Under the pieces are notes generated by a model. That model saw only the letters and a list, made by a program, of their open reading frames with translations, searched no databases and was not told the DNA's origin. 64,000 nucleotides of DNA, taken from NCBI RefSeq assembly GCF_006345805.1, contig NC_043014.1:46934001-46998000 (forward strand), in the 5' to 3' direction. The position numbers were made by a program, and so were the translations under genes. This DNA comes from Octopus sinensis (taxonomy: Eukaryota). Shown one piece after another: positions 4,597 through 62,785 of the stretch (its first letter is position 1; every line of letters begins with the position of its first letter).

Positions 4597-5024
4597 ATTC
4601 CATTAATCATGTAACAATTAATGAATCTCAATTAAACTTACAGCCTTGCCTTTTTAAAATGATATCCTGATAACATTATAACTGTGAACTATTTCATTTT
4701 CAAATATTAAATATATTTAATTGTGAAACGTTTTTAATTTTTGTTAGGTAAAACATAAAATGGTTTGTCACTTTGATAATGGTCATTTTTCTTATAATAG
4801 ACACTCCTAGACATTCAAAATTGCATTGATACAACTTCTGGTATAGTTAATCCTCCTCAGGATTGACAATGACTTTCTGTTTGTGTTGACTTCATCTTGT
4901 CAATAATACAATATGTATCAATACTATTTCTTGTTCACTGATAATTTTTTCATAGTTCTTTCAGAATCTTTGGTTCAATCTCTTTCAATTACAACTTTTA
5001 CTCAATAGAACAAAATTTCAGTGA

Positions 5025-5190
5025 TGTGCAGATATGGTTGCACAGTTAAGAAGTTTGCTTCCCAACCACATGGTTTTGGGTTCTGTCCCACTGTGTTGCA
5101 CCTTGGGCAAGTGTCTTCTACAATAACTCCAGGCCAATCAAAACCATGTGAGTGAACTTGGTAAATAGAAACTAAAAGAAACCCAACATA
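5025..5190 (+). mobile_element. Older 5' fragment of SINE family B (tRNA-like head plus CORE-like domain)
   Basis: Diverged copy of the head of the adjacent 5196 element (accacatggttttgggttctgtcccactg...ccttgggcaagtgtcttcta). Confidence 0.75.
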
Positions 5191-5195
5191 TATAT

Positions 5196-5595
5196 AGGCG
5201 CAGGAGTGGCTGTGTGGTAAGTAGCTTGCTAACCAACCACATGGTTCCGGGTTCAGTCCCACTGCATGGCATCTTGGGCAAGTGTCTTCTGCTATAGCCC
5301 CGGGCCGACCAATGCCTTGTGAGTGGATTTGGTAGACGGAAACTGAAAGAAGCCTGTCGTATATATGTATATATATATAAGTGTGTGTATATGTTTGTGT
5401 GTCTGTGTTTGTCCCCCTAGCATTGCTTGACAACCGATGCTGGTGTGTTTACGTCCCCGTCACTTAGCGGTTTGGCAAAAGAGACCGATAGGATAAGTAC
5501 TGGGCTTAAAAAGAATAAGTCCCGGGGTCGATTTGCTCGACTAAAGACAGTGCTCCAGCATGACCGCAGTCAAATGACTGAAACAAGTGAAAGAG
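5196..5595 (+). mobile_element. SINE family B, near full length
   Basis: Pol III A/B-box-like head (ggctgtgtggtaag...ggttccgggttcagtccc), CORE-like cttgggcaagtgtctt, internal (TA/TG)n, and 3' body ending gactgaaacaagt. Close reverse-complement match to 6106-6510. Confidence 0.9.
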
Positions 5596-6105: not shown

Positions 6106-6510
6106 ACTCTCTTTACTTGTTTCAGTCATTTGACTGCGGCCATGCTGGAGCACTGCCTTTTAGTCGAGCAACTCGACCCCGGGACTTATTCTTTTGTAAG
6201 CCCAGTACTTATTCTATCGGTCTCTTTTGCCGAACCGCTAAGTAACGGGGACATAAACACACCAGCATCGGTTGTCAAGCGATGCTAGGGGGGGCCAAAC
6301 ACAGACACACAAACACACACACGCATATATATATATACATATATACGACGGGCTTCTTTCAGTTTCCACCTACCAAATCCACTCACAAGGCTTTGGTCGG
6401 CCCGAGGCTATAGTAGAAGACACTTGCCCAAAGTGCCATGCAGTGGGACTGAACCCGGAACCATGTGGTTGGTAAGCAAGCTACTTACCACACAGCCACT
6501 CCTGCACCTA
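6106..6510 (-). mobile_element. SINE family B, near full length, inverted relative to the 5196 copy
   Basis: Reverse complement aligns end to end with 5196-5595 with few mismatches. Confidence 0.9.
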
Positions 6511-9600: not shown

Positions 9601-10220
9601 AAACAGGTTCTAAAAGTATTATGTATATACACACCACTGTACCCTCATTCAGTTTGTCCCCACCACTTTATCTCCCAATCATTCATTTAAGTATTACATT
9701 ATTCTTCTGCTGTAATTAAATGAGAGCAGATCTACATATTTCATCATCTTTCTGTGCTATTAGTTATCTCTTCCTCTCCTCTGTATCACTGCCTTTTGAT
9801 ATCCATCCCTCAACCGTTTCCCTGCCCCACTTCATATTTTCTATTGTTTACCCTTTCTGTGCAACCAGCTATCTCTCCTCCTACCCTGAACTGCTTCATA
9901 TTGATACCCATACCTTATTCTTAACATTGTCTCATATCTACAATCAACTACCCTCCACCCTTGTTCACCACCCATATCTCTGACCTCTTCCACTTCTATC
10001 ATTATATGTCTCTCATTCTCCCACTCTTGCCCTCTTTACTCACCCATCCCTGCCTGCCATAGCCCTATCTCTCATCTTTCCTCCTTTACCTACTGTTTTA
10101 TTATTATTCTGCTACTCTTCATCCTTTCTCTAATGCCAGTCATCACCTCCTCACCCTTGAGTCACTTCTATTGATATCCATTCCTCATTCTTATCATCTT
10201 CCTTCAACTCATATTTACCA

Positions 10221-10546
10221 TCGCCCCGACTGCCTCCGTGCCAGTGGCACGTAAAAAGCACCATCCCATCGTGGCCGTTGCCAGCCTCTGTGCCGGTGGC
10301 ATGTAAAAAGCACCATCCGATCATGGCCGTTTGCCAGCCTAGTCTGGCACCTGTGCCAGTGGCACGTAAAAAGCACCCACTACACTCATGGAGTGGTTGG
10401 CATTAGGAAGGGCATCCAGCCATAGAAATATTGCCAGATCAGACTGGGCCTGGTGCAGCCTTCTGGCTTCCCAGATCCCAGTTGAACCGTCCAACCCATG
10501 CCAGCATGGAAAGTGGACGCTAAACGATGATGATGATGATGATGAT
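10221..10546 (+). mobile_element. 5'-truncated RTE-type retroposon 3' end with (GAT)n tail and three internal tandem copies of gtgcc[a/g]gtggca[c/t]gtaaaaagcacc
   Basis: Three ~25-bp direct repeats, the conserved gtggttggcattaggaagggcatccagcc block, and aacccatgccagcatgg before (GAT)7. The same 3' end recurs at 10895-11098 and 63705-63752. Confidence 0.75.
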
Positions 10547-10894
10547 ATTCCTCCACCCCCTTCCTTCACCGTTCACTGCATTTACCCCTACATTCTTCTC
10601 TAACCATCCTTTACTTACCTCACAGACTCTTTCAACCTTTACTCACCTGCTCTCCCTTCCTGATCTTCTGTCCCACATTCTCTTCTATTCACCTTCTTAT
10701 CCCTTGAGGGCACATTCTGACACCTCACCGTTACCATCTTTATCTCCTTCAGTTACTTCACCCACACTTATACAATGTAAGGCAACCACATAACTCCTCT
10801 ACATCCAACAAAACTGTTCTTGATCTTTCTTTCATTCTCTAACAATGCTGCCTCCCATTCTGCTGTACCCCAACTCAGTTGAGGGGCTTTTTTG

Positions 10895-11098
10895 TGAGGA
10901 TCTCACTTATAGTGGTGCCATGAAAAATACCCCCAGTACAGTTTGTAAAGTGGTTGGCATTAGGAAGGGCATCCAGCCATAAAAACCATGCCAAAGGAGA
11001 CATTGGAACACAACACATCTTCTGACTTGTCAGTTCATGTTGAACCAGCCAACCCATGCCAGCATAGCAGATGGATGTTAGAGGATGATGATGATGAT
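10895..11098 (+). mobile_element. Second RTE-type 3' end with (GAT)n tail
   Basis: Shares gtggttggcattaggaagggcatccagccata and aacccatgccagcat with 10221-10546 and ends in gatgatgatgatgat. Confidence 0.75.
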
Positions 11099-11889
11099 AA
11101 TACACACACACAGTTCTTAAAGAGGACATTTTTTAACTGGTATTTTACTGATGGTTACAAACATTGTATAATAATTTCTTTTGATGCCCCCACAGAATGC
11201 TTCTTAATTCATTCATGGTTGCTGTCATAGGTCTAGGGCCATCACCTTTACTATATAATAGTATACCCCTATATTTATAGATGAAAAGCATCTCATCATA
11301 ATACATCAGAGAATCATTCACAAAATTAATTAGTCATGTATCATGGACACAACATTTCCTGATTCCATGGACTAGATGTATCAAGTCCCTTTCTTTTTTA
11401 TTAGAATTGTTTCAATTTTCTGTATATTTATTTTTCTTTAAAAGCTGTTTGTGACAACTGTGACACATGGTGCTGAAGAAGATGCAACCACCTGTGCAAG
11501 ATTGGCAAAGTGAATGCAAAATTGTTTGTAATGGTGGAGGTTGAGAGACAATATGTATATTTCTTATCGACTCCCACACACACATATCTGCAGTCAAGTC
11601 TACATCTGCTGCATATTTGGAACTCTCTCATCTCCCCATCACACATTTCTCTATCATTTGTGCTGCCTGATACAGTAACTACCAGTATTCAATCTCACTA
11701 CCAATACCCTATCGTGAGGCCTGGGTATAAGGGAGTGCATTGGACCTGCCTCTACCACTACTCTCAACTATTACCCTTTTGCTGCTGTAATTCATTAATC
11801 ATAACATTTATTCACCATGTTGACCACATTGTCTTGAGTACATATATTAGTGTAATAAAGATTCTTTAATCTTACATTGTACAAGGTGA

Positions 11890-13170: not shown

Positions 13171-14437
13171 TTGGGTCATCCCATAAATAATGTGGTTTTT
13201 TATACTTTTTTTTATTTTTCAAAATTAAGATAAACAAAGTTCTTTTTTAATCTAAAATATACTCTCTTTCATTTTCTACAATGCCCTTCCATCTATCTGG
13301 TAGACTTGCAAGGTTCCTCTGCCAAAATTCACTTGTCTGTGACAAAAATTACTCCTCCAGTACTGTTCTGATCTCGTCTACAACATTCACATTTTTCCCA
13401 CCCAAATGATTTTGAAGACTGCAGAATAAATGATGATCAGATGGTGAATATGGTGGGTGGGGTATCGTTTTCCATTCTAACTGCTCCAGCCTTTGGAATG
13501 TCATCCTTGCAGTATGTGGCTGAGCATTATTCTGATGGAAGAACACCTTTCGTCTTGAAACCAAAGATGATCGCTTTTCTTCTAGTGCTGACTTAAGCTG
13601 CTCAAGCTGCTCACAGTAGATCTCCTTTGTTATCATTTGGTCTGGGTTTAAAAGTTCAAAGTGGACTAAACCTTTCATATCCCACACAACAGATAACAAC
13701 ACCTTACATGGGTGAAGACCTTCTTTAGCCTGAGGTACTGGTGTTTCTCCTTTCTCTACCCACTGTCTTCGGTGCTTGACATTTTTATAGAGAACCCATT
13801 TCTCATCGCCAGTCACTATTCAGTCCAAAAAAGGTTCATTCATGAGATGTGACAGCAAAGAAGAGCACACATTCACTCTCTGCATATAATTAGACTTAGA
13901 AAGTTTGTGAGGAACCCATTGACCCAATTTGCTGACTTTTCCAATGGCACACAGGTGTCAATGAATGATTGAATGACCAAATCCAAGCTTCTCTTCTAGT
14001 TCCTCAACAGTTACGATGGGATTTTGTTCCACCAGGGTTTGCAGGACGTCTTCATTGAGCTCTACAGATCTTCAAGAATGAAGCTTGTCTTCTAAGCTGT
14101 AGCTTCCAGCTTGGAGTTTCTGACTTATGTTTATTGTCTGATCCCCATATATTGCATTAATATTCCTTGCACTTCCCCTTGCGTTGTTGCCTTTATTGAA
14201 CTCATGAACCAAAATATGCCGAATATGCTCCTTTATCACTTCCATTATAACTTTGAAAAAAATAACTGTTAAAATCGAACTGCACTCTTCAAAACTTGTA
14301 CTAAGAATAAGGACAAGGTAAAATTACTACCTGCTTTTATAGTAAGTTGATGCAGGTAGTCAAGTAGTTTATCCCATCACCCTCCAACTTTTAGCTTGTT
14401 CAATTGAAAAAAATGCATTATTTATGGGATGACCCAA
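13171..14437 (-). mobile_element. Full-length, inactivated mariner (DD34D-type Tc1/mariner) transposon, 1,267 bp
   Basis: TIRs ttgggtcatcccataaataatg (22 bp identical, about 28 bp imperfect) at both ends, flanked by TA (13169-70 and 14438-39). Minus-strand transposase runs from ATG at 14245 (MEVIKEHIRHIL...) to about 13247, with TGDEKW and GLHPCKVLL motifs. The second catalytic D is changed to N (HQNNAQPH), YSPDLAPSD is shortened to YSPSD, and stops and frameshifts are present. Confidence 0.95.
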
Positions 14438-16206
14438 TACATACATACATGTGTAGATAGATAGGCAGATGTGTCTATATATATGGTAATTAAGAGCTCA
14501 ATTGATATACATCATGTTATAACAAAACAATTTAACTTAAAACTGAAAAATTACTTAATACTTTTTTGTAGAGTACATGTTTATTAAACTTATACAAGAG
14601 ATGTGACAATGACTTTGAGGTTTTAGTCTGATAATAAGCATGTGTGTGTGTGTGTGTATGCACATGCATGTGTGCGTGTGTTTGTGTGTGTGTGTAGTTA
14701 GAAGAGATGGCTATGACTGTGTAGGCTTGTTTCCTAGGTTACTAAGACTGATGTAGTTGATATTTTCTGCTTGAGCTTCTGTTTAAAAAAATCAGATCAC
14801 GTATTCCATAAGAGTTCAGTTTTAGGAAAGAAGTATTTTGTGCAAAGTTGGAAGGTGAGATACATTCTTAGAAATATAATGGAAGCAACATCAATTTGGA
14901 GTGCACTGATCAGATAAAAGTCACCCAGTGCATGGACATTCAATATAACAATATAACTTTATTTTAAATGATGGAAACTCTATAAAACAGAACAAAGATA
15001 TACAGTTGCAGTCACAGGCTTTGTTCTAAACATCAGGTTCATTTTCTCACAACATACAAACTTCTTTAAATTCCAGAATTTTATTGTACAATTTTTGCCT
15101 ACAGCAACCACTGCCAGTTCCCTCGGATTCTGCTTTTTCAATTACATTTTTTTTTACAGAATCATTTACCATTGAACCTGCAAATGAGTTTGGGTTAGTT
15201 TGGAGAAGTGAGCTAAATATTAAAAACAACTGGAGGAAAATAGCTGTTTGAAAAACTTGATAAATTTTTTGTTTAATTTGTCCATGAATGTTGTTCTAAA
15301 TACAATTGGGAATGTTAGAATTTTGGAAGATGGCTTACCATTATATCTAGCAAATGAATTTACAACAGCTGCGAGATATTTTGAATCTTTAATCAAACTT
15401 TATAGCTCCCTTCTGTGAATGAGCAGATGAAAGAGGTTGCTGGTTGTGTGTATCCCTGTTCTTCACATACACACACAAAAAATACCACATAAAAATATAT
15501 TCATGGTTAGTTATATGGATTTTTATTTGATGTGCATACACATTAGCAATATAAAAATCTGCTCATAACATTATAATGTTAAATAGGGAAATCAAATGAA
15601 GGTAGTGATTTAATCTACTGCAGATTTTTTTATGAAATATTTAAACTGTTCTACAAAAGTAGATGCTGCTGATATTTTCTTGTTTCTATATTGTTCTATG
15701 AAATCATTGAAGTAATGTACAGTTCTTTGACCATAATTTGTGTGAAGAAAAATTGTTAATTATTGTTGCCAATAACAAAATTTATGAGCTTTTTTTCTCC
15801 TTTCTTTCTTTTCCTTTTGCTAAACTATATTGTATAATTTTCTGTGCTGTGTGAGTTTCTTTCCTGGAAACTCCCCATGTGATGTGCTATTGGCTCAAAT
15901 GCTTTTCTCATTTCCTCGTAGATTTAATAAGTGGAATATAAAGTTGTACCACTTTCCATTAATTACACATTTTTCTTTCCTTCTTAACTAATTACAATGC
16001 TAGAGTAGACATATCGATGCTATTGTACTAGGTGAGTTTGAGTTCTCTGTCTCAATGAAACAGTTATTGTTATTTCTTTTGAAAGTTTACAAATTTTCTT
16101 TTTGCAATTTTGTAAATTAAAATAATCTCATGTGTCTTGTTCAAAAATGGTTAACAGTTATGTGATCTGTATTGATTTCTTTATTTGTTACTCCTTAAAC
16201 AAGCAG

Positions 16207-18711
16207 CGGACCTAGATGTATTGCAGCGCAATGTCAACCATGCAAGCTCAATTCGAGAGGGCCAGTATGGTGATGTATCATTGTCTACAACAAAGGGCAA
16301 AAATGGGAAACAGGCAAACAGCAAATGTTTCAAACAGTCCAAAACTGGCAAACTGTATTATTCTCTACCAGATGTCGTGGCTATTACAAAGAAACATCAA
16401 TCAGATATTGGAACCTCCCCGTCTATGCCCAACATAAGAAACCTTGGAAAAGATAGATCCAGTTCTCTCCGAAGAAAGAGTTCCCAAGCCAGTACACAGT
16501 CACATGAAAAAAGATTAACAGGCTCATCAAAAAGTCTCGCAACTTTCTCGATCAAGCGTCAAGTTGATGGGACTCTACAGCTGGAAAATGTCAGTAACAA
16601 GATTTCAGAACAATGTAAGGGTGAAAAGTCATTTTATTCAGTCCCAAATGTTGAAAAACTCGCAAGCGAGGTACAACAAGTGGGTGGGAAAGTAACGACT
16701 TCACTCGTTGACATTAGAAACAGTAAATTCTCGCTGTTGACTGATTTTCCCCGGTTTGATTCCAATCTAAATACAGATAAAACTGATCAAACACAAAGCA
16801 GTAAATGTGTGACCTTTTCTAAGTTTTCGACTGAGCAGGACATCAAAAGTTCGTGGGCATCTCTTTCATCGGGGACAAAAGTACTCCCTAAAGCAACCTC
16901 TGTGGAACTGAAGCATGGTGTGCTGCCCAACTCACAAGTCTACGTTCAGTGTACAAAAGATAAAAAATCCGTGCCAGAGAAGTGTGAAAAACTCTCCAAT
17001 TCACTTCTTGACCAGATTACCGATTACTGGAAACCACCTGCTATATTCAAACAGTTGTTCAACCCACCTATCTTTATAGAAAGTTCCACAGATCCTATAC
17101 CCTTACAAGAAAACTGCAGGATTCCAAACCTACCTGAGATTGTTGAAAGTCTAAAGAAACCTCAACGCAAAAAATCTAAGAAATTAGGAAGCTCCTATGC
17201 CATTGTAGACCAAGCATTGAAGGACATGAAGTACAGGAATTTGTTGAACACTTATACTGATGAAGATCTTGCAGTCCTTCCTTCCCTTTCGAATCAGTCC
17301 GTACAAGGAGAAAGAACCTTACTTTCGTCTGTTGATGATGTTAATCTCAGCAACATGGAAAATATTTATGAAGAAACAACTATAACAAACACATATGGCA
17401 CGCCCGTTGACCTTCTAGCAACCCAGCAAGAAAAATTCACATTTCAACAGCCCTTTGGAAAGCCATCACAGCTGATAGTCGTTGAATGTCCCAAAAATGA
17501 TTCTGTTTCTAATGTTGATTCCGGTCTCATTGTAGATCCATCTAGGTTCAACCAAGAAAAATCAAAATCTACCGATTTTCATATCAAATTTGATAGAGCT
17601 GAGAAAACACCCTCAGTATTTCGATCCCTTCCAACATCTTCTTTAAACAATAATTACAATGTACATGTAGACAACAGCCCAGATCCAGACCAACAACGGC
17701 GAATTTCTTTACCCCACTGCAACATCCGAGATGTGTCTGGGACAAATGTGGATACTGACAGCAAAATTTTGCAGCAGCAACAATTATTACAGCAACATCT
17801 CCAAAGATATTTGGAGCCATCAAGCTCAGGCAGTATTGTTGAAGTAGCAAGTGATGAAGATCTCAAATCTAATGACAAATCACCTAATTTCCCTTATATT
17901 GATGTTGAAGCTACTGTTAGACAATCTTATGAAAATCAGAATCAACCCCATCAACAGCCAAGGTTTTCGACAAGGTCTACATATTATGAGAGCTATGAAG
18001 AAGTGAAATACCTCACGTCACGGAAACTATCGTGCTTACCCCCCGTTTCAGAAGTTGAAAGTGATGAAATATCTACAGTGTCCGAAATAAGCAATTCTTC
18101 TACACAACAAACTACATCTGCCATCGATATGGTAAAACCCACTTTGAAAATCTTTACCTCTGCTGAACCTCTGCCTACTACAAAAACGTCCAGAGAAGGA
18201 TTGACAAAAAACATGTCCAGAAAGAAAATACATCAATCAACCAGAAGTATGTCAACTTTTTTGGCCGAAACAGCACCCAATAAATGCCCTCCAGCCTATT
18301 ATGTCCGTAGTACTGGCAATCTGCAAAACAAGGCCACCTTTGCAGACGTTGTACTTGCTAGTACGAAAATGCTTCGTCATCAGAAACCAGGATTATCGTC
18401 AAGCTGTATTGATATGGGGATGGTTGTTAGTAATCGAATATATGATCAGCAGAGAGAGTTTGGTGCACCTAAAACAGCCATTTCTTTATCAGATATGAAA
18501 TATATTGGAAGCAGGACAAGTCAATCAAGCCCAAGTAATAGATCAAATTCAATGGCTGATGTGGGTTCGGTGTGCAACAAGTTATCAAAAAGCGAAGGCA
18601 GAAGATATTCATATTCGATGTCAGATGTAAAGAATCTGAAGAATTCAATGTCTGGAGGCAACAAGGGGTCAACCAAGTCGCTAAGTAGGATTGGCTCTGC
18701 CATCATGAAAG
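16207..18711 (+). CDS. Giant internal coding exon (2,505 nt, 835 codons, phase 1 to phase 1), most likely part of the cytoplasmic domain II-III linker of the Nav2-type channel
   Basis: Stop-free 848-codon ORF (16185-18731) in very AT-rich DNA, with no true start Met. It begins at a polypyrimidine tract plus tandem acceptor (tttctttatttgttactccttaaacAAGCAG, 16201-16206) and ends at a donor (AAAG|gtaagc, 18711/18712). Exit phase 1 matches the entry phase of exon 53781. The protein is Ser/Thr/Lys/Gln-rich and low-complexity, with no transposon domain. Coding status is strong; assignment to the channel gene is inferred from strand, position and phase. Confidence 0.8.
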
Positions 18712-19358
18712 GTAAGCCTTTTTTTGTATAATTTTAATCTTTTATTGAAAAAGTTGAAAGTTAATGATTCATTGTTAAAAATACAAACCCTTTTAGACCT
18801 CTCTATCTTTGATCTTTCTACTGTTATCTTAATGTTAAAAGCACTTGACTACTTCACTGAATTAAGATTATAATAAAACTTTACTCCGTTTCCAATGTTC
18901 AATAAATTCTATTGATTATACACAGAACACTTGCTTTATTGTAAGTATTACAGCAATAGGAGGTGATATGTTGTATGTTGGCAAAATATTATTGGAATAT
19001 TATTACTTTTTAATTATTTACATGTGCTTAAAATTACCTCCATTCTCTTATTTAGTCTTCTCCCTCTCTTCTCTTTCTCTCTCTCTCTCTTTTACTCTGT
19101 TTATCTCTCTCTCTCTTTCACTCTTTCTCTCCCTCTTGTCCATCTTTAAGAAGGTAAAAGGAGTTTATAATTTCTACATAGTTTTTTTTTTGCTTTTTCA
19201 GTTGGATTTGCATGTCAGCCTGAGAGATCTTTAAAAATATGTATACCTATCTATCTATATCTATAATAAAAATACTCAGCTATGCATAAGTTACAAAGAA
19301 CAAACAGTGGTTATGAGGGGTTGAGATAAATGATAAGGATGGTGATGATGATGATGAC

Positions 19359-22858: not shown

Positions 22859-23542
22859 TCATTATCATAGTTAAGTAATAGGCTGTATTAGCACCTGTGC
22901 AAGTAAGTCTGATCTTCACATGAAGTATCTAACAATAAATGCTATATAGTTTGACAAAATCATTCAATCAATACCAAACCAAATTATATGTGATGTGAAT
23001 TTAAAACTCTTCACCTAGGAATGGCAATATTTTTTTCTCACTTGTTAGTTTGTCAGTAATTAGTGAACTCGTTAATACATTTAAATTCTCAACCACAAAG
23101 CCTCTATGTAATTATCAATTTAACAGACCGCTTGCATTCTCAGAGCGATGCGATTCCTGATTGTTGGGTAAACATGGCACCGAAGTGCAATAAATGTATT
23201 TCAGTTCTACACAGTCATCTGTTGTTGTTGCTGCTGTTGTAATGGTGGCAGTGATGGTGGTTGTTCAGGTTCACTGGTTCAACCAGTAAAACAACTGACT
23301 GCTAATTAGCAGCTTGACAGTTTGTTTTCTTCATTATTACATCACATAATCTGAAATACTATTAGAAACTCATACATAACACACACACACACACACACAT
23401 GCACTCAACACTTATTCATATATGACAATTCACAATATTCTTACATACTGAAATTCATTTTTACACATGTACGCATGCGTGCACACACACACACACATAC
23501 ATGCAAATATGTATATTTATACATGTACAAGAGTGTGCTTGA

Positions 23543-23574
<32 letters not shown>

Positions 23575-24482
23575 ATTTATGAATGTATAATATGTATATA
23601 TATTTATGCATGCATATATATATATGGATGTACATATGTAAGTATGTATCAGTATATATATATGTATATGTTTATAAATATCAGTGTATGTGTATATAGA
23701 TATATATATTAAGTTAGAAAGAAAGTCCTGTCACATTTCAAGTTGGGTAAGAAATAAATGTTTTTTCTGGTTTTAATTGATATATTTAATCATGATGATA
23801 TTTCGCGTCATTATTGATAACATAATCCCATCTATTTGGAAAATTATTGATCCCTCAGATGTAAAATTCTTAAGATTTTAAAGCAGATTTTTCACAATTA
23901 AAAAACTGTTTTCTCTCTAAATAATGTCGCAATGATCTGGAAAGATGATAGTCAGAGCAAAGTGAGAAGACTAAGGAGGATGAGACAAAACTTCTATATT
24001 TTGCTAATTCTCATGCAGTTTGCTTTAGATTTTCCTCAACTATAGTTTTCAGAAGTTCTATACTGATAGAACATGGTCATCTAGATCAAGAGGTCTATGA
24101 GAGAAAAATTTGCTGAGTTAAACTGACCAAACTATTTTCGGCATATCCCCAGACACTTAAAGCTTCACTTCCATAGACAGAATGACTATTCTTTGTTGCT
24201 TCCATTGCTGAAGAGCCCTTTTTAAAATTCATACAGCATGCAATGTCTGATATGGATCTGATCTAAACTCATTTTTAAAGGGTAAAATCAATATGAATTT
24301 AACCACTATAGTATAAAGTAATCTGGTAAGAAAGAAAGAAAAAACATTAGAATGTAAAAATTTATGCTTATTTTATTGTAAGTATTGAGAAAGTACCCTC
24401 AGAGTGACCATGTCAAAACAGGACAGAACTTTCTTTCTAATTTATATATGTGTATATGTGTGTGTGCGTGTGTGTGTATGAT

Positions 24483-26245: not shown

Positions 26246-27367
26246 ATAATTACGTATTATATCTCCACAACACCTCACTCACCCATGTGATATTGACCTC
26301 ACTGTGCCATACATCTACAGAACACAACCGAAATATCTTTAAATAAATAAAATCTTCGCAAACTATTGCTTCTCACTTTCTGCAAGCCAGTATTAGATGT
26401 ATTGTAAATAGCAACAGGACATGATTAGGAAATTTTATATAGCTGCTGAGTGGCCTTCAAGACACAAGTGCAAATGGTTTTTACTACACTGGTGTTGTAG
26501 TTATAGCCAGCAATTTGTTTTAGATGAGAAATGTGAGACTTGTATGAGCTGAGAAGAGCATAAAGAAGGTGTTCAACGGAGGAGAGTCAAATGTTTTACT
26601 GACAAAGGTGAAACATAGTTGCTAATAGTCAACCACTCATAAACTTTACTAGGTGTGGTGTTGTGAAAGAAAATAAATGTCAGATTATTGTACTACATTC
26701 TTTCTCATGGAGGTGTTGGAGCAGTAAGTTGAATCATTCATTCAGCTAATAATAATTTATTTTTTCTAATTTCAAACCCTTTCTATAAAAAGATCGACCC
26801 TGGTACTTCAACAACCTTGAGCACAAAATGAGGATTTGAAACCAGAACAGTGATGTACAGAACTCTGGACATTGAAAAACATCTAATGTCTGTTCTACTC
26901 TCTTAGGTTCTACAAAGTTCCACCACTACTTCCCCATTCCAATTTTAATAATGATTAAAAACTTGTACTAACATAGAACAGTGGACAATACGATAAAAAT
27001 GGGGTTTACTGGGATACAAGAGGAAGGAATATAGATTATTGAATATCAACATGTTAATGATACTGACTTTCCTCAGCTTCTTTATTGGGAATTTTTCAAA
27101 CCTATCTCTTTACACTGATCTTTCTCTCTTCTTTTTTTACATATTATTAATTCCATCGAGTATCATGATTTCAAATCCTGGTTATAGTGATCTCACTTAA
27201 TAATAAATCTATCCTACACCCTATCCCAATCTATATATATATATGTCTATGTGATGTGGTGTTAAAGTAAAAGCAAGTTCCCAATAAAGTCGTTCTTAAT
27301 TAAAGCCAACTATTTTATTTAATGATTTTACAATGAACTACAAGTGGCACCAGCATTACTCAGGGGG

Positions 27368-27369
<2 letters not shown>

Positions 27370-27401
<32 letters not shown>

Positions 27402-27430
27402 GCATATATGCATATACATACATACATACA

Positions 27431-27464
<34 letters not shown>

Positions 27465-27518
27465 CATACATACATACATACATACATACATGCATACATA
27501 CATATATACATATATATA
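27370..27518. repeat. (TA)n/(TACA)n compound microsatellite
   Basis: Directly visible. Confidence 0.95.
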
Positions 27519-28139
27519 TTTCTATACTTCATAATGTTAGAAACGTAAATATATGAAAAAATATATATCTCAGAGTGCAAACTCAATATATTGGGTACGT
27601 TTACTATATCAAAAGCTGACAGTCTACTCAGAGTTTTACTCCAGGCTGGACTGCTCAAGATACTGAGATTAGAGTAAATTGTTTGCAGTTTATATGAGGG
27701 TATGTTGACCTTGGAAGCTTATGTAAGAGTAGTGAGATAAGTGTCTTCAAAAACTAATTTCAAAATGTAAGCATTATGATGGAAAGTTATTGTTAATGTA
27801 TGTGCTAGTAAGAATGGGTCAGGACAATCCTTGGATTTAGTTGAACTTATTAGAGGAAGGAGGTTAAATCATTAAGATGACCTTTGTACTGGCTTGAGTG
27901 ACATGACTTAAATGATATTGTTACAGAGAGATTGATTTTGGTGATTGGTTATTCTTTTTCAATATTGTAGTTCAGAGGTCAAATTTCAGCAAATTGAAGG
28001 CTGGCTTTTATTGTGAATTGGATATGTACAGACAAATATTTGCAAATATGTATTTATGGAAATACATACGGACACACAAAATATGAATATTTTAATACAT
28101 ATATTTATTCATATGTGCGCGCACGCACACACACACACA

Positions 28140-28177: not shown

Positions 28178-28654
28178 CAATTAAGCCCTGTCATTTGAAC
28201 TAGTATAAAAGTCATCCTAATAATTTAATCTATCGATAATGATTTTAGTTAAATCTATTTATAATGCAAACATGTGTAGAGTTAACGATTATTCCAATCC
28301 ATTCATAAAAGACCTTAACAATAAAATTCCATTATAAATTCTACGTCTTTAAATTAGTTTTCAATGTTATTTACCACCTCATCTCCACATAAACCTCCAA
28401 GGTTAACACAGTGTTATATATAACCTGCAAACAAATCATTCTATTCCATAGATATTGGACAACATAGAACAGGATGAAACTCTAAGTAAATTGTTAGTTT
28501 TTTATTTAATGAACAGATGTGTGCGGGTATATGTATGAAAATTCTTGAATCAAAGACGAAGGAAACCAAAAATCCAAAGACTCTACAAGAGTTAAAGATA
28601 ACTGTAGATCACATAGCTATATTTTATATTTTATCATTAGATCTATAAAATACA

Positions 28655-28656
28655 AC

Positions 28657-28700
<44 letters not shown>

Positions 28701-28839
28701 CAACTACGTATATAGATAGATAGATAGATATGCATATATATATATACATTCATACATACATACATATATATACATATATATACATATATATACATGTATA
28801 TATATGTACACACACACATACATACATTACATAAATGCA

Positions 28840-28870
<31 letters not shown>

Positions 28871-28876
28871 CATACA

Positions 28877-28909
<33 letters not shown>

Positions 28910-28945
28910 GCATGCATGCATATACACACATATGCGCACACACAT
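28655..28945. repeat. (TA)n/(TACA)n compound microsatellite
   Basis: Directly visible. Confidence 0.95.
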
Positions 28946-29649
28946 ACTATCTCAATAGAAGGAGTGAGGAATAGGGATAGATCTATGAAAAACAAATTTT
29001 GTTCATAAATATTAAAAGCAAAAGAGAATAAATTTATTATGCAGACGAAAATTTGCTGTGTGACATTTATGTCATATAATGTTGTAAAACAAAGAAGCTA
29101 ACTATTTTTCCCTCTTGTTCTCTAAGCACACATATTCATTAGAAGTGTATGTATATGTGTGTGTGTTTGTGCATGTGTGCCTTTGATATTAATGTCTTGG
29201 CTCAGTGTCTAAGTCTTGTAAGTATGTATGTTTGTAATTCCTCTGCATACATGCATTATTTTCTAAATGTCATTTATCCAGCAATATGGAAAAAACTTGC
29301 TTAATGTATCTATCTAATCATAAACTATATTTTTCTATCATTGGGGTTCTTGAGTACAGAAATGCTGGAAATTATTTTAGGCAAAAGGGTTTGTCTGTAA
29401 GAGTACTTTAGGTAAACCATTCTATCATAACTATTTTTTTTCTAAAATCCAGTTACATACACACACAAACAGATTTTTGAATTTTAGTATTATACAGATA
29501 AATGTCACAATTTCTCTTTTTGTTTCTACAAAGAACACAATTTAATCTCCCTATGTAAGAAATAGATATTTTTTCAGTTAATGATTATCCATTGATAAAT
29601 CTTCCAGGGTTTCAATATTTCTAGTATGATTAGTTTATTTTTTATCCTT

Positions 29650-34867: not shown

Positions 34868-35329
34868 TAGGCAGGGAGCTGGCAGGATCATTAGCACACT
34901 GGGCAAAATACTTATCAGCATTTCATCCATCTTTACGTTCTGAGTTCAAATTCCGCTGGGACCGACTTTGTCTTTCATTCTGTTTGGGGTCAATAAATTA
35001 AGTACCAGTCAAGCACTAGGGTTGATGTAATTGACTAGCCCCCCTCCCACCTTCTCCAATATTTTAGGCTTTATGCCAATAGCAGAAAGGATTATTATTA
35101 TAATTAAGACTGCGAGCTGGCAGAGTCATTAGCACACAGGACAAAATGCTGAGCAGCATTTTGTCTGTCTTTACATTCTGAGTTCAAATTCCACCAAGGT
35201 CAACTTTCCCTATCATTCTTTCAGGGTCGATAAAATAAATACCAGTTGAGACCTGGGGTCAATATTATCAACTTACCCCTTTCTCAAACTTGCTGGCTTT
35301 GTGCCAAAATTTGAAACGATTGTCTAATT

Positions 35330-35348
35330 ATTATTAATATTATTATTA

Positions 35349-35381
<33 letters not shown>

Positions 35382-35382
35382 T

Positions 35383-35426
<44 letters not shown>

Positions 35427-35493
35427 TATTATTATTATTATTATATTATTATTATCATTATTATTATTATTATTATCATTATTATTATTATTT

Positions 35494-35530
<37 letters not shown>

Positions 35531-35556
35531 CATTATTATTACTATTATTATTATTA

Positions 35557-35617
<61 letters not shown>

Positions 35618-35720
35618 CATTATTATTACTATTATCAATATTATCATTATTATTATTATTTTCATTATTATTATTATTATTATTATATTATTATTATTAT
35701 TATCATTATTATTATTATTA
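35330..35720. repeat. Long (ATT)n microsatellite (~390 bp) within the SINE array
   Basis: Directly visible. It is the source of the poly-Ile, poly-Tyr and poly-Asn ORFs in the track. Confidence 0.95.
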
Positions 35721-36101
35721 AGGTGGCAAGCTGGAAAAATCCTAGCTGTCATTGTCCATCTTTACATTCTGAATTCTGCTGAGATCAACTTTGCCTTTCC
35801 ACTTTTCAGTGTCAATAAAGTAAGTACCAGTCAAGCACTGGGATCGATGTAGTCGACTTTCTCCCTCGACACAAAGTTTCAGGTCTTATTATCATTATCA
35901 TTATTATTAAGGTGGCAAGCTGGCAGAGTCGTTAGCATGCTGGGCAAAATGCTTAGTGGTATTCGCCTGTCTTCGCTGAGGTCGGCTTTACCTTTCATAC
36001 TTTTGGGGTCAATAAATTAAGTACCAGTCAAGTACTGGAGTCGATATGATCAACTTACCCCCTTCCCACAAATTTCAGGACTTGTGCTTATAGTAGAAAG
36101 A

Positions 36102-36133
<32 letters not shown>

Positions 36134-36157
36134 CATCATCATTATCATTATTATTAA

Positions 36158-36193
<36 letters not shown>

Positions 36194-36224
36194 TTTTTAT
36201 AATTACTTTTTATTATTATTATTA

Positions 36225-36264
<40 letters not shown>

Positions 36265-36505
36265 CATTTACGGTGGTGAGCTGGCAGAATCGTTAGTGTG
36301 CTGGATGAAATGCTTAGCAGTATTTCGCTTGTCGGTACGTTGTGAGTTCAAATTCTGCCAAGGTCGACTTTGCCTTTCATCCTTTCAGGGTCAATAAAAT
36401 AAGTACCAGTTGAACACTGGGGGTCAGTGTAATCGACTCATCCCCTCCCCCCAAATTACTGCCCTTGTGGCAAAATTTGAAACCATTATTATTATTATTA
36501 TTATA

Positions 36506-36564
<59 letters not shown>

Positions 36565-39500
36565 CATTATTAAGGTAGCAAGCTGGGTGAATCATTGGTG
36601 TTATTGGATAAAATGCTAAGTGGCATTTTATCCATCTTTACATTCTTCCAACTCTTTATGTTTTAAGTTCAAATCCCATCCAGGTCAACTTCACCTCTCA
36701 TCCTTTTGAGGTTGATAAAGTACCAATCGAGTACTGGAGTTGATGAAATCAATTTGCTTCAAAATTGCTTTCCCTCAAAATTGCTGATTTTGTGCCAAAA
36801 TTAGAATTACTTTTATTACTAATATGGCAACAAGGTGGCAACATTGTTAGAACATTGGGAAAATGCTTTGCAGTATTTCTTCAGGCTGTTTACATTCTGA
36901 GTTCAAATCCCACTGAAGTAAATTTAATCTTTCATCTTTCTGAGGTCGATAAACTAGTGCCAGTTAATTACAGAGGTTGGTATAATCTACTTGCACCCTT
37001 CTCTCTCAAAACTGCTGACACTTTGTTCCAAAATATGAAACAGTTGTTATTATAACTATCATTATTGTCATTATTGAAGGTGGTGAGCAAGCAGAATCAG
37101 TGGCCTGCCAAGCAAAATGCTTCTTTACATTCTGAGTTCAAATTCCACTGAGGTTGACTTTGCTTTTCATCCTTTTAGGAGCAATAAATAAGTACCAATC
37201 CAGCACTGGGGTTAATGTAACTGACTTTCATCTCCTCCCAGACCTGCTGGCCTTGTGCCAAAATTAGAAAGAAGTATTGTTGTTATCATTAATATGATTA
37301 TCATAAATAGTAAGAAGGAAAGATTAGTATAACATTAGACTAAATACTTATAGTATATGTGTTATTTCTATATGTTCTGAGTTCAAATTATACTGAGGTC
37401 AACTGTTTTTCTATTTTTCTTTTTCTTTTTTTTCTCCATCTTGCCATACTTGATGAAGTTTGGCAGGATGAAGGCCATCAATAATATGTTGGAAGTTGAT
37501 TCCATTTGACTGTACTCCTATAATTGTTTTGATGTTGCTCCAGTGTAAGGAGTTGACTGTACTCCTCTATGATTATGTTGGTGTTATTTGAATGTAAGAA
37601 ATTATTATTGCTATTTAGACAGTGAATAGCAGTTGTGCTATTTAGTAATGTCCCTTTATGTTCTGAGTTCAAATCCTGCTGAAGTCGACTTTACTTTTTA
37701 TCCCTCTGGGGTCAAATTATCAACTGTGTCTATGCCAGAAATCGTTAATATTAGGTAAATGTTCTCAGTAAACTGTATAATAAGCATAATTTTCAGCTTC
37801 AAAATCTTAAGGTGGCAATGACTTGCTCACGCACACACACACACATACACACACACACATTAGATTGTGTGATGCTCTTTAAGCAAAACATTATGCTGTT
37901 TCTCTAACTGAAAAAATATTGTGGTGTTTTGGCAATGTAAAGAATCGTTATTGTTGTTCAGACATCGTTTACACTACAAAAGGATTCCCCCAACCATAAA
38001 TCCTTTACTTCAGTAATTTGTACAAATATTTAAATTTACAAAACAGCCAACCCGTTCCACTAGAGATATCTACTTTCATATAGATATTGATGTCTTAACA
38101 AGATAGTTTTTGGAGGGTATAAACACAGTAAATTGTGTTAAGTTCTGTGAATTACTGGTCGTGCTTGCCTCGTTGATTTTGAAGGATTCGTACAGACAGG
38201 TTAATGAGCTTTGGGGCTAACAATGATGGAACTAAGTACTGTAAAATACTTGATCTGCTATTGTAATATTTCTGCCAACCCTAATGAGAAATAATATTAA
38301 TAGTGTATTTTCTGAAATTATGTAGCTACAAGAATACCATTAATTTGACTTTAGCTAATTATTATTTCTTAATTATATTAAAAAAATTTGTTTAGTGTAG
38401 TAGATAGGTTGTAGACAACTCAGCCTCATTTTATTGCTCTGTCAGTATTGGAGCTTTGAAAGTCAACTATAACTGTTTGAACTCAGAAATATGAGGCATT
38501 GAACTAGATAGTGTTGCATCTGTCTACCCTTTAAATCAATTCCTTGATATTTTAATATAGAGTACCTATTTCAATACTTGAGCCGAGCCCCAAATTTTAT
38601 TTACTATTTATTAGTGTCATTCTATTTCATTTTTGAGAAAAATAAAACAACTAGCACTCAATCTCTTTTCTTTCTCCTGTCTCTTATTCTATAAATCTTG
38701 AGATCTTATACTTTGGTCAGTGTTGACTAATGAGTTATTAATTAGTGATAAATGTAACTTTCTAATTTTAATTTAAGGGAAACACATTGCCGAAATTGTT
38801 TGTATAACATTGATTAAATAATTTGGTATGATATATTACTTTCCTTAAAGATATCTTCTATTAATTACAATTTTCAACTAAAGAGAAGTATTTGGTATTG
38901 CTGTATTTCTCTTGATGTTTAATGCTCATTTTTTTTCCTTTTATAATGAACTACTTCAGTTAATGATATTGTCCACTAATTACTATATAACTTACCTTTA
39001 AAGAGATTTAGCCAACTATTTCCCATAGCTAATTATGTATAAGATGGTTTACTCAGCTGTTTCTCTTTGGTGACCCATTAAAATAATATTTGTTTTTCTT
39101 AGCAAAATAGATTTCAAAAAGTAAACTGGTTCTGCCACTTCTGAAAAACTGATTTCAAATCCTACCAGTTCTTTATCTGTCTTATATTGATTTACTTATT
39201 TTTACAAAGATAAGGAATAAATATTTTTACTATACTTCAGTAACCTACATAGGAGGCAAGTCACAAAAAAAGATGAAAATATCTTTACATTTTTTTCATT
39301 CTTTCAAAAACAGTTTTGCTTTTAGAATTGCATTGCTTAAAATAAATACATCTTGAATTTGACAAAGAAATCGGCAAAAATGAATAGAAGAAAAATATAA
39401 GTTTATTAGAAATATTTCTTTACTTTTACTCTTTAAACTATTTAGTTTTAGTCATGAATTTAAGTTTATTTATAAATATTTAATAGAATTATTTATAGAG

Positions 39501-49100: not shown

Positions 49101-52100
49101 ATTAATACTTAATTATTAATTTTGTTGATATTTTAGAAAATATTTCCTCATGTTAAATAGATTTTTTTTATTCATTTATTATATAATATGTCAAAGATTA
49201 TACTTCCTATGTCATTCAAACAGTTTATATCATTGTTAACTGAAGCATTTCTCTCCTTCCATCACCATTTCACTCTCTTCATTCTAACATGCATGACTAA
49301 TTGTTGTTAATTCTCATTTTAGCAGGCTATACACCAACACCATGGGGCTTCAGGTCCCAATAGAAGAACATGCCAGATTTGTCAGGGTGCACCTTGCAGT
49401 TTCTCACTCCACCCAGTAGCTGTATGTCACTCAAACATTGACAATTGACTTGATAGAATATCTTTTGAAAGAAAATTACACACATATATATATACATATA
49501 TATGATATATATATTATATATATATATAACATGTAGCTAATTTGCATTTTAAAATTTTTAAATGCAGCCATTGATATAGTTTTTTACAAAGATATTTTAT
49601 AAATTTCATGTCCCCCTCAACAGGCAGCTCGTTACATTTTGACTTTGTTATTTGGATTTTTATAGGAATTATTGAATTGCAGTATTGTATGATAGGACTA
49701 TCTTCAACGACTATAGAAACAAAACTATTGGTCAGATATAAATAATGCCAAGATGTTTCACTAATAACAGAAATATTCCAAATTTAAATAAGGGCTTATG
49801 ACGACATTATTATTATTATTCCACAATTTAAACACTCCTTTGCTGCTTTCAATATAACATATTCAGAGATTAACAAGCAGATGCATTAATATTATAAATG
49901 TCCAGCTTATAATAGCGGACCTCTAAAACACCCAACACACGAATTGCTTTGGGCACAATACCTGTTCACTTATCGACTCACCCTGCTGTGGCATATTTTC
50001 TTATCAAACAATAAAATAATTCAAATGCAATATTGAATAAACTATTTTCTTTACTACATAACAATATTTTGATAGTACATAGTTATGGCTGACTCAATAT
50101 CATTATAGTACTCACCTGAAGTGAAAATCATTGTCTGTTATTTTCTATGTAGACTGTGTTTTAAACAAAATACAGCCTGTCAACAATGACATGTAGTCTG
50201 TACTTGACTAAGTATAGTTTATACACCATAAAAACAGCATACTATTGCTTTGGTGCACCAATGGTAGCAGGCCCAATAACATATATTTCAACTTACATTA
50301 GGGTTAGGGTTATGGATAGTAGCTCAAAGCAAAATTCTCTTTTGCAGATGTTTCCTTATAGTCAATTTTACAAAGCTACCAGCTTCTGAAGGACGCCACC
50401 TGTTTGGGGGCAATAGGATTGAATGGTTTTGTTGATTAGCCCCAAATTTAAACCATTAATCCAGCACTACAATGGCACTCGAGATGACTATTTGATAAAC
50501 TGGCACTGAAAGTTGCAAATCACAATTGATTTGCTTCCCTCTTCAACTCCTCACAGACAATTGTTAACAACTGGAGCTACACTCTTTCAAAACAATCAAT
50601 TGTTTCACCATTTTAACTCTTCTCACTTTCCTCATTATTTCCTCATTATAATCTTTATTCCCATATTAATTAGAATAATAATTTCTCCAATAGTCTTAGT
50701 TTAATCATCACAGTCTATTTTGATATAATTTTGAACGATTTCATCTTTATTATTAAACATGAGGTCTTTTTTTATGCTAATTGTTACAAAGAAATCATTA
50801 TTTAGTAATCAAGCACTTTATAATTCATCAGGTTTACTCATATTATACAACCATAATTATGCCATTCTTGTCTTAAATCGCAATAAGGTCTATTGGCAAT
50901 TCCAAATTAGAGAGTGATATAGACTTCCACAAATATCGTTTGAAGCTACATACTTTACAAACAAAAGTATGAGTGCAGACCCATGTTATCCTAAACTATA
51001 ATTATATTTCTTTAAACACCCTTTCCTACATCCAAAATTTAAATTAAAAGATGTTTTCATTCATCTTCTGCTTATTCTAATATTTTTGCATTTTCTTTTT
51101 CACCACTTTTTCACACTCACACACACACGCATTTTAAGAATTTCTTCACTCACAATTTACAATAATATTGAACTGATAGTTTTATAGGAAGTAACTAGTG
51201 TGTAGCTAGACTACTTCTTTCTAATGACCAAATCTTGACAAAACATTACTCCACTCATCATTGTTTCGGTCAAGTATATAACAAGCAATTATTAACAAAA
51301 CTTAATACTAACACTTTTTACTTTATAAAAACTAACAAATCTGTATTAACTAACATTAGTGATGCTAACTTTTTACTAACTCCATCCTCTTAACAATGCT
51401 GCTGTTTCTATGACTACTATTATTCTACAAATACTATTATTACTGCTGCTGCTGCCACTGCTACTTAATACATTGTCTCTCCTCCTCCTCCTCCTCCTCC
51501 TCTTCCTACTACTACTATTACTACTACTACTACCACTACTACTACTACTACTATTTTAGTCACCAACAGCAGGCCACCCCAAGCACCAGCTGGCAATACC
51601 GACATCAACAGACCAGCATCTTTGCAAGTACAACACCACATCTTATGGCTAGTCTTCACAATAAAGAACACTTTCAAAAACTCAAAGAAGGTAGTTTGCA
51701 ATGCATGAATTTCATGGATTGGTGAAGTATATATATTCCTGTTTGATGTATATGAAAAAAAAAAAAAAAAAAAAAGAAAGACAGAAACAGGATGATTGCA
51801 AAAATATGTTTTAATTCTGCTGCTGCTACTACTACTACTACTGCTACTGCTATTGCGCTTGCATGAATTTTGTCTTCAGCTTTGGCTTCAAACACTCTGC
51901 ATGATCTGTTTTTTGAAAATAAAACAATGTTCAAATTGCATGTATGCATCATTATTTTTTATATTATTATTTTTTTTTTTATTACAACACATCAAAATAG
52001 TATTTTTCTTGAAAGTAAACTACAAAATGTCTTTCTGCTCTAGGTAGATATTTTCCAAGTGACTTTAGGTTATGATTCTCTGATGTTCTATGTTTGGAAA

Positions 52101-52470: not shown

Positions 52471-53780
52471 AATTAATATTTCTCTGTCCCACAAACTCAC
52501 ACACACACACACACACACATAAATCTCTTGTTATTGTAACTTCATATACAGTTGAGAATTACCGTGAGACAGTTGCTGTGTAGAGTCATCAAAGAACTCT
52601 TTTCGCATTTAATGTTTGAACAGAGCTAAAAAACAAAGTTAATGATATTCTTAATATGAATATTGATCCTTAATTATTGGTTTCTGGAGTATTCATGATG
52701 ATAAATAATCATTTAAAAATCAATCAGTCATTTCTCATTGATACCACCACCATCCTCCTTTCCCTGTGACTGTTCTGTTGTTGCAAACATGAAATGGCTC
52801 ATACTTTGTCTCAGATATTACAATTTGATGAAATTGTAATTCATATTCAGATTATTGGAATATTTCACCAAAAATTATAGATTTAATGAAAAATAAAACC
52901 AAAACTATGTTAAATTTGCCATTTCTTAATGCTATTCTGTGCTTAGATGTTTTTGGAAGAGCTGCCATGTTCAGAACTATACATTCTGTCCAATTACAGT
53001 CTTCCCCAGCTCTTTTGTTTTGATAATGAGGTATATTGCTATATATTACCTATATCTATTGGTTATTTAATGAAACATACTATTCCTTTCTTTGAGACAC
53101 CTCTCTTTATGAAGCTAATACTGTGTGAGCAGTTAAAATCATTCATGTTACTCTTTGTAGCAATATTAGATTGTTTCACCAAGTGAATAATTTGTATAAT
53201 ATGGTAAAAACAACCAAGAAATCTGTTCAGATAATTTTCCTGAAACACTCTATTTTCTAGATTAGATTTACAAAACTTACAGAATAACTCGACACCAAAT
53301 ATATTTGTCCCCATAGTAATTATGCATTATCTCTACTCTTACATATTTGTAGCTGTCTACATCTCCACACATGTTGATAGAGATTGCAATAAGAGAGCAA
53401 TATATTATTATCAGACATGCAGCCTTTGTATACCATTATTTGTTTCTCAGCATTTTGCATACACACACTTCTTGAAACATATAAATTTCTATTTCATTTT
53501 ATATGCAGTACACACCTTTAAGATTTTCTTTATTTAATTATTTACTTTGAATTACGCAAGAACCAAATGCTGGTTTTTCTCAATTTGTTTGATACAAAAA
53601 CATTATAACATTGAGTTTCCAAGATAATTAAGAAACAGTATTACAATGAATTTTGAAGTCATTTGTATGTAGAGCTAAAAAAGAGTACTCTCTGAAATAG
53701 CTTGTTTGTGCATTTACTTTAACGTTACTTGCCAACTGACTGTCAATTATCTTTCTTATATTTCCATTTTTGATCCACAG

Positions 53781-53842
53781 TTCAGCAGAACTCAGAAGAA
53801 ACCAAGATAGACTTGCGGAATAATTTAAAAAAGTCTAAACTG
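53781..53842 (+). CDS. Nav2: Nav2-type channel, II-III linker exon (62 nt, phase 1 to 0): xQQNSEETKIDLRNNLKKSKL
   Basis: Acceptor tttccatttttgatccacag and donor CTG|gtaagt. Only one frame is open, and its exit phase 0 matches the next exon at 58069. Confidence 0.7.
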
Positions 53843-58068: not shown

Positions 58069-58232
58069 GATGATGTTATAATGGAGAACAACTGTAACAA
58101 TGAAAGTCTTGGTAGCTTAGGTTCCCTGGGTAGCATCCCTGACATTATGGACAACTCAAGTGTAGAAGAAGACGTATCATCATGTCAACAGAAAGATATA
58201 ACACCTTGCTTACCACTTTTTATCTCATCCAG
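58069..58232 (+). CDS. Nav2: Nav2-type channel, distal II-III linker exon (164 nt, phase 0 to 2): DDVIMENNCNNESLGSLGSLGSIPDIMDNSSVEEDVSSCQQKDITPCLPLFISS(R)
   Basis: Acceptor atttttgctcctccaaag and donor CCAG|gtgagt. In frame with both neighbouring exons. The SLGSLGSLG..PDIMD...SCQQKDI.PC.PLFISSR stretch matches my recollection of the squid SQSC1 channel (unverified). Confidence 0.9.

Positions 58233-62706: not shown

Positions 62707-62785
<79 letters not shown>

Follow-up and report, generated by a model that had tools for sequence, protein, structure and literature searches.

Which protein, if any, makes use of a stop-free frame of 851 codons that lies upstream of sodium channel exons in the genome of Octopus sinensis? 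The question is raised by a 64,000-nt stretch of the forward strand of contig NC_043014.1 (assembly GCF_006345805.1, positions 46,934,001 to 46,998,000), hereafter called the window and numbered from its first letter. An original prediction, made from the letters of this DNA, had read positions 16207 to 18711 as a giant exon with good acceptor and donor sites and phase 1 at both ends, apparently lying within the linker that joins domain II to domain III (the II-III linker) of a cephalopod Nav2 channel. At a probability of about 0.85, we consider that this segment is a coding exon of the Nav2 gene, under purifying selection, which adds about 835 disordered residues to the II-III loop when it is included.

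First, the frame and the splice sites were reproduced. An open reading frame (ORF) scan of the window delimited a stop-free run at 16176-18728 on the + strand. At the G+C content of the window (32%), stops should occur about once in 14 codons; for an 851-codon run, the probability computed from the base composition of the window is about 2e-28. The acceptor ...caagcag|CGGACC sets the start of the exon at 16207 and the donor ATGAAAG|gtaagc, of the form AAG|GTAAG, sets its end at 18711. The exon and its upstream flank are as follows.

16207 to 18711, + strand: giant internal coding exon of the Nav2 gene; 2,505 nt (835 codons x 3), phase 1 at both ends; predicted disordered insertion in the II-III linker; drawn from the open frame, the splice sites, the sepiid orthologues and the DSC1 gene model of Sepia pharaonis.

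16170 to 16206, + strand: conserved intronic flank before the acceptor; pyrimidine-rich tract followed by CAAGCAG; the blastn match to Sepia begins 37 nt before the exon.

Intron conservation around the exon thus extends over about 37 nt upstream, and over about 10 nt downstream. The pyrimidine tract is weak near the AG of the acceptor. A second AG at 16225-16226 (ttgcag|C), 20 nt inside the exon, is also conserved; as octopus and Sepia differ, over the 20 nt that separate these AGs, mostly at codon position 3, 16207 is the better acceptor.

The coding status of the exon follows from its orthologues. In a large protein collection, two ORF-type matches were found, each with 46% identity over 98% of the query, and both derive from genomic loci: a 2.7-kb Logan contig (L001) and a 516-kb ENA contig from a second sepiid (L002). 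The exon sequence of L001 is identical to that of the Sepia pharaonis locus (L003, GCA_903632075.3), and the three-genome comparisons reported here are those of the window and the two sepiids. The sepiid exons measure 2,514 and 2,517 nt, lengths divisible by 3, contain no stops and retain the CAAGCAG|C acceptor and the ATGAAAG|GTAAG donor, with protein conservation reaching both sites. Between the window and the sepiids, protein identity is about 50%, dN (nonsynonymous divergence) is 0.40 and dS (synonymous divergence) is saturated; the two sepiids are separated by a dS of 0.18, with a dN/dS of 0.22. Several indels separate the lineages and all of them keep the frame. The original prediction had proposed looking for the open frame in relatives and estimating dN/dS, and both outcomes agree with it. 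Because the indels are frame-keeping, dN/dS is 0.22 and the orthologues are free of stops, 16207-18711 is a genuine internal protein-coding exon, under purifying selection and common to distant coleoids.

To which gene does the exon belong? The cluster of protein matches includes CAE1265172.1 (A0A812CEW2), a 1,476-amino-acid model named 'DSC1 [Acanthosepion (Sepia) pharaonis]', and the giant exon is therein already present in a public gene model. This protein begins within the giant exon, at an ATG, runs to ...SSVIMK and continues, from the next, small exon (VQQNSEETKIDL...), as VQQNSEETKIDLRNNDKQSK-DGMILENNCNN...FISSRFKCLREFDD..., before domains III and IV (Pfam Ion_trans, 6e-91, two stretches). 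On the Sepia locus, its exons have the same order as in the window and a similar spacing, with a 31-kb intron (35 kb in the window) followed by a 59-nt exon (62 nt in the window). The original prediction had joined the giant exon in frame to an exon at 53781 inside a Nav gene, and this independent Sepia model makes exactly the same join. The downstream exons in the window are the following.

53781 to 53842, + strand: linker exon VQQNSEETKIDLRNNLKKSKL; 62 nt (59 nt in Sepia), phase 1 to 0; 90% amino acid identity to residues 824-843 of the Sepia model, with boundaries found in both species.

58069 to 58232, + strand: distal II-III linker exon, DDVIMENNCNNESLGSLGSLGSIPDIMD...CLPLFISS; 164 nt, phase 0 to 2; 84% identity to the Sepia model.

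58887 to 59028, + strand: exon for the end of the linker and domain III S1; 142 nt, phase 2 to 0; 94-96% identity to Sepia, with a PDB match to Nav domain III.

61826 to 61999, + strand: exon from the end of domain III S1 to S3, AFEDIYL...HFWTILDFTIVC; 174 nt; Pfam Ion_trans at 3e-10, a Nav1.4 match and the FWTxLDF motif.

Spliced in the predicted order (giant exon, 53781, 58069, 58887, 61826), the chain reads as one frame without a stop: ...SAIMK-VQQNSEETKIDLRNNLKKSKL-DDVIMENN...FISSR-FKCLREFDD...AFEDIYL...HFWTILDFTIVC. A direct join of the giant exon to 58069 creates a TGA (G|GATGA), so that the two have to be bridged by an exon whose length is 2 mod 3, as that of the 62-nt exon is. The last two exons align to domain III S1-S3 (human Nav1.4 residues 1035-1148, whole-query E 4e-30 in the PDB search). 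The matches at 58887-61999 thus bear out that the giant exon lies on the same strand as, and upstream of, Nav domain III exons. Identity between the window and Sepia is 84-96% across the domain III exons. The 62-nt exon itself is bordered by conserved intron sequence, about 35 nt upstream and about 18 nt downstream (GTAAGTAAAC.AAACAG, window 53746-53860), and these flanks equal or exceed in length those at most neighbouring exons.

The homologous domains seen are domain III S1-S3 in the window, and domains III and IV in the Sepia model. The window itself holds no pore exon and the filter residues were read from the Sepia orthologue, whose identity to the window over domain III S1-S3 is 94%, in a region that alone discriminates poorly between Nav2 and Nav1. 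In the Sepia model, the domain III pore reads TFEGWMEIM, with an E at the filter position where Nav1 carries a K, the domain IV pore reads TSAGWNDIL, with an A, and the III-IV linker holds an MFLT motif (...YLDMFLTPTQQ...). The E in domain III, the A in domain IV and the MFLT motif designate the gene as Nav2, the type that the original prediction had named. When the domain III-IV part of the Sepia model was used as a query, the best non-cephalopod matches (525-633 bits) were partial proteins of molluscs that carry FEGW and 'sodium channel protein 60E' of arthropods, above the para-like proteins (about 460-478 bits). Domain III S3 of the window reads FWTILDF, as in the fetched matches with FEGW, while fetched proteins of the para/Nav1 type read NAWCWLDF. 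Both the filter residues and MFLT are as described for DSC1/CaV4 channels (PMC4969797; PMC3805903), and an MFL(T) inactivation motif was described for AmCaV4 and LbSC1 (PMC4969797; PMC3805903). Octopods were reported to have one Nav1 gene and one Nav2 gene (PMC7656900). By these sequence signatures, the host gene is identified as cephalopod Nav2, the orthologue of insect DSC1/NaCP60E/BSC1, which is also called CaV4.

A long frame next to channel exons could also belong to a separate gene on the same strand, nested in a Nav2 intron, or be a non-functional ORF or the relic of a transposon; it is true that no Pfam, PDB or non-cephalopod homologue links the peptide to channels. Nonetheless, the exon agrees in phase with the Nav2 exon that follows, its surroundings hold no other conserved coding segment in either species, CAE1265172.1 joins the exon to Nav2, and the frame is conserved at saturated dS, with the dN/dS of 0.22 given above. 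Moreover, conservation begins at an AG and ends at GTAAG, and not at a start and a stop codon of an independent gene. We therefore regard a nested gene or a relic as very unlikely, with next to no weight left to it.

The start of the Sepia model at an ATG inside the exon suggests another reading, in which an internal promoter would make the giant exon the first coding exon of a two-domain (domains III-IV) half channel with a long N-terminus. That no gene is called in the 10 kb upstream in Sepia goes in the same direction. However, no start codon is conserved, the first in-frame ATG being at 16425 in the window and about 60 codons earlier in the alignment in Sepia, and conservation of amino acids and of wobble type extends to the conserved AG acceptor. 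Such a half channel is thus unlikely and only a small share of the probability goes to it.

The reading of the giant exon as an internal exon of a full-length channel places domain II upstream of it. Domain I and II exons were not found anywhere in the window by motif scans and by tblastn with Nav1.2 segments. As these exons are missing from the window, the remainder of the gene would lie upstream of it, with the giant exon inside the gene span, and the junction of the exon to domain II would be made there. A weak tblastn match at 32556, considered as a domain I/II exon, proved not to be an exon.

Searches with protein and contig collections bear little on the complete channel. The spliced peptide of the window (linker and domain III) gave no match in a word-indexed protein search, to which full-length channels are effectively invisible. 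In a later search, every match listed was of about 1,000 amino acids or shorter, and the 1,476-amino-acid DSC1 model is filed in a 90% cluster whose representative is an 831-amino-acid ORF of the exon. Since the Sepia model is hidden behind this representative, the missing annotated full-length Nav2 proteins are uninformative. The Logan contigs with the cuttlefish exon (L001 and L004-L008) are all genomic or unspliced and carry intron flanks.

What does the exon encode? The peptide of the giant exon is rich in serine (15%) and lysine (9%), with an isoelectric point of 9.2 and a grand average of hydropathicity of -0.72. It has no Pfam family and no PDB match, and when 1.84 billion cluster representatives were searched exhaustively with a profile, no homologue came up beyond the cuttlefish cluster. 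AlphaFold2, run on a shallow alignment of three sequences, gave a mean predicted local distance difference test score of 30.7 and no domain, the sole structures predicted being four short helices (residues 257-273, 309-312, 331-339 and the glutamine-rich 516-533). The segment is thus predicted to be intrinsically disordered. Its conservation is patchy, with three parts standing out.

16317 to 16658, + strand: N-terminal conserved islands; motif copies YYSLPDVVA, SPSMPNIR and FYSVPNVEK; conserved RRKS/KRKGS site.

16923 to 17288, + strand: best-conserved core of about 120 residues (about 239-360), ...KCEKLSNSLL.QIT..YWKP..KQLFNPPIFIESSTDPIPL..NC..IPNLPEIVESLKKPQRKK...QALKD.KY.NL.NTYTDED; identity to Sepia of 68% or more in sliding windows of 25 residues.

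18549 to 18698, + strand: C-terminal conserved island, SMADVG...KSEGRRYSxSMSDVKNLK...KGSTKSLS; conserved RRYS site and two motif copies.

Four sites of the basic-basic-x-Ser/Thr type are conserved (RRKS, RRIS, RKLS and RRYS). A short motif, S-[LVMI]-[PSAV]-[DN]-[VIM], recurs in 8 copies against 0.1 expected, a shuffle statistic that is inflated by the definition of the pattern after the sequence had been viewed. For that reason, the sounder evidence for the motif is its positional conservation, 7 of the 8 copies being at aligned positions in Sepia. The chordate ankyrin-G motif [VA]P[IL]AxxE[SD]D is absent from the giant-exon peptide, which has no conserved SxIP motif either.

Several points weigh against our attribution of a disordered loop insertion to Nav2. 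Domain II exons were seen neither in the window nor in the 10 kb upstream in Sepia. The two junctions, from upstream into 16207 and from 18711 to 53781, are read from phase, conservation and one gene model, and this model is truncated at its 5' end, beginning at an ATG within the exon. The call of disorder derives from the alignment of three sequences, the recurring motif was chosen on the sequence in which it was counted, and the function proposed below is suggested by the anatomy of the gene and by the II-III loops of related channels.

Is the giant exon present in all Nav2 transcripts? The original prediction held that skipping it would keep the frame, and this was borne out by its length, a multiple of 3 in three genomes, with phase 1 at both ends. 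Two readings are to be weighed here, to which we give roughly equal weight, each being possible but falling somewhat short of even odds. As a cassette exon, it would be switched by tissue or cell type between a short Nav2 of about 1,500 amino acids and a giant form longer by about 835. As a constitutive exon, it would give all coleoid Nav2 proteins a giant linker, short cDNAs or gene models then being partial or the result of lineage-specific loss.

The preservation of the symmetric phase through several indels is in favour of a cassette, but symmetric phase is also common among constitutive exons. The weak pyrimidine tract near the AG and the conservation of about 35 nt of upstream intron point the same way, while the conserved donor AAG|GTAAG is strong and purifying selection acts along the whole exon, as would be expected of a constitutive one. 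Regulation of splicing is further suggested by a conserved element bearing GCATG in the downstream intron, but it is about 30.6 kb from the exon, and in all three species the 400 nt on either side of the exon are free of GCATG. The exon is part of the sole gene model found; on the other hand, internal exons of 2.5 kb are rare and sometimes skipped. If the squid brain cDNA SQSC1 (Q05973) encodes 1,522 amino acids, it would be too short to contain the exon. This would be at odds with constitutive inclusion, but as an argument for a cassette it presupposes that loliginid squid retain the exon. Precedents in insects exist on both sides: the DSC1 orthologue of a booklouse has three alternative exons in the same linker, and insect Nav2 linkers are long in the main isoforms (PMC3805903).

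The element of the 35-kb intron is described as follows.

49290 to 49425, + strand: single-copy conserved element with a conserved GCATG and a strong acceptor-like TTCTCATTTTAG|CAGGCT, with an exon-like start at 49323; 80% nucleotide identity to the Sepia intron (L003, 34096-34226), one copy per locus.

It is as conserved in nucleotides as the domain III S1 exon. Read in phase 1, as it would be after the giant exon or if that exon is skipped, it meets a conserved TAG after 13 codons in both species. It matches no Rfam family, neither of its strands folds stably, and no good donor is conserved. It is not a tRNA, and its single copy per locus does not fit a repeat; it is not consistently open in any frame. 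The element may serve in the control of splicing, or else be a stop-carrying (poison) exon comparable to exon 13B of the booklouse DSC1 orthologue. The fuller proposal, that the coleoid-specific module of 835 residues is spliced in and out by regulation, with 49290-49425 perhaps controlling the splicing or, as an exon with a stop, leading to two-domain products as in the booklouse, is tentative and we consider it rather doubtful.

Comparison with known systems helps to situate a giant Nav2 exon. In insects, it is mainly long II-III linkers that account for the length of DSC1 orthologues, which carry many predicted PKA and PKC sites (PMC3805903), which confirms what the original prediction had stated on insect Nav2 channels. 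In Liposcelis bostrychophila, the same linker is alternatively spliced, and one of the exons carries a stop, leading to two-domain products (PMC3805903; PMC4969797). Fux et al. noted that, among the parts of Nav channels, the I-II and II-III linkers diverge most, and that linker introns are fewer in Nav2 than in Nav1 genes (PMC6259924). The cephalopod gene resembles the Nav2 channels of insects (DSC1/NaCP60E, BSC1, LbSC1 and honeybee CaV4) by its filter residues of the DEEA type (of which E and A were read here), its MFLT motif and its NaCP60E-like best matches. It also shares with them a II-III linker that is basic, unusually long and rich in kinase consensus sites. It differs from them in that the insertion is made of one 2.5-kb exon with no detectable similarity to insect linkers.

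Among cephalopods, SQSC1 is the presumed orthologous gene in a loliginid squid; with 1,522 amino acids, its product would lack the giant exon. The accession Q05973 and the name appear in PMC4794918.

Two further comparisons concern form and location. Like the giant exons of vertebrate ankyrin-G and ankyrin-B and of Drosophila giant Ank2, this is a single multi-kilobase, frame-preserving exon for a long, probably disordered segment of a protein of excitable membranes. Unlike them, it has an unrelated sequence and another host protein, and the cephalopod peptide contains neither a conserved SxIP nor an ankyrin-binding motif. The analogy with ankyrins is a resemblance in form only, and to extend it to function would be speculation. 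The II-III loop is also the cytoplasmic loop that other four-domain channels use for localisation and partner binding. In CaV2, it holds the synprint site. In chordate Nav1, it holds the ankyrin-G motif (PMC6259924). Those sites are short motifs in linkers of ordinary size, in contrast to the giant exon, and the Nav1 motif is the one absent from its peptide.

Altogether, we can propose the following role. Exons for domain II, upstream of the window, would be spliced to the giant exon, and the latter to the small exons for the distal II-III linker and domain III. Inclusion would put about 835 basic residues, rich in serine and lysine, into the cytoplasmic II-III loop. Selection would act on short islands rather than on a fold, namely the core of about 120 residues, the glutamine-rich helix, the 7-8 copies of the motif and the four phosphosites. 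The basic-basic-x-Ser/Thr sites, of the PKA/CaMKII type, would offer predicted phosphorylation, and the short motifs might serve in binding and control how the channel is trafficked, localised or gated, in line with what this loop does in other four-domain channels. By analogy, the most likely role of the insertion is thus that of a disordered segment for regulation and docking.

Our literature search found no paper describing this exon, a cephalopod giant exon or the cephalopod Nav2 linker. As judged from the genomes compared, what is new is a coleoid-specific single exon of 2.5 kb, dissimilar to insect linkers and open since the divergence of the window species and cuttlefish. It is not a new kind of system, since long and alternatively spliced II-III linkers are documented for insect Nav2.

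The rest of the window is marked by repeats. A mariner-type transposase remnant (13352-13819 and about 14075-14323, both on the - strand; Pfam Transposase_1, 5e-25) lies in the intron upstream of the giant exon, and a related mariner-type copy is found in the Sepia locus (L003, 3283-3629). Paired, related open frames (5005-5448 on the - strand with 6257-6510 on the + strand; 10154-10600 with 10878-11227; and 63594-63866), which read ...THQHRLSS.ARG...GTEPGTMW and ...PCQHGKWTLNDDDDDD and stand on opposite or the same strands, resemble copies of interspersed repeats. A 69-nt match of 81% identity joins 63642-63709 to L003 41320-41253 on the opposite strand; its position and orientation are non-orthologous, and it is probably a shared repeat. 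Finally, long microsatellites of A+T-rich trinucleotide type and of TA/CA type occupy 35300-36650 and many other sites (2450-2680, 23350-23730, 27300-27550, 28650-28970 and 62500-63300), where they produce spurious long open frames (poly-I/Y/N, YIYIYI).

To our knowledge, Nav2/CaV4 is the least understood branch of the sodium/calcium channel superfamily, and it is absent from vertebrates. As the exon has been kept open under purifying selection since the divergence from cuttlefish, coleoid Nav2 carries a large module without counterpart elsewhere. The Nav2 protein may be larger than short cDNAs or split gene models suggest. The conserved motifs, the positions of the phosphorylation consensus sites and the exact junctions provide starting points for studies of how the channel is localised and regulated in the neurons of cephalopods. 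If the module were indeed spliced in and out by regulation, one gene would produce, in different neurons, a compact channel, a giant one that bears the scaffold, and possibly truncated forms.

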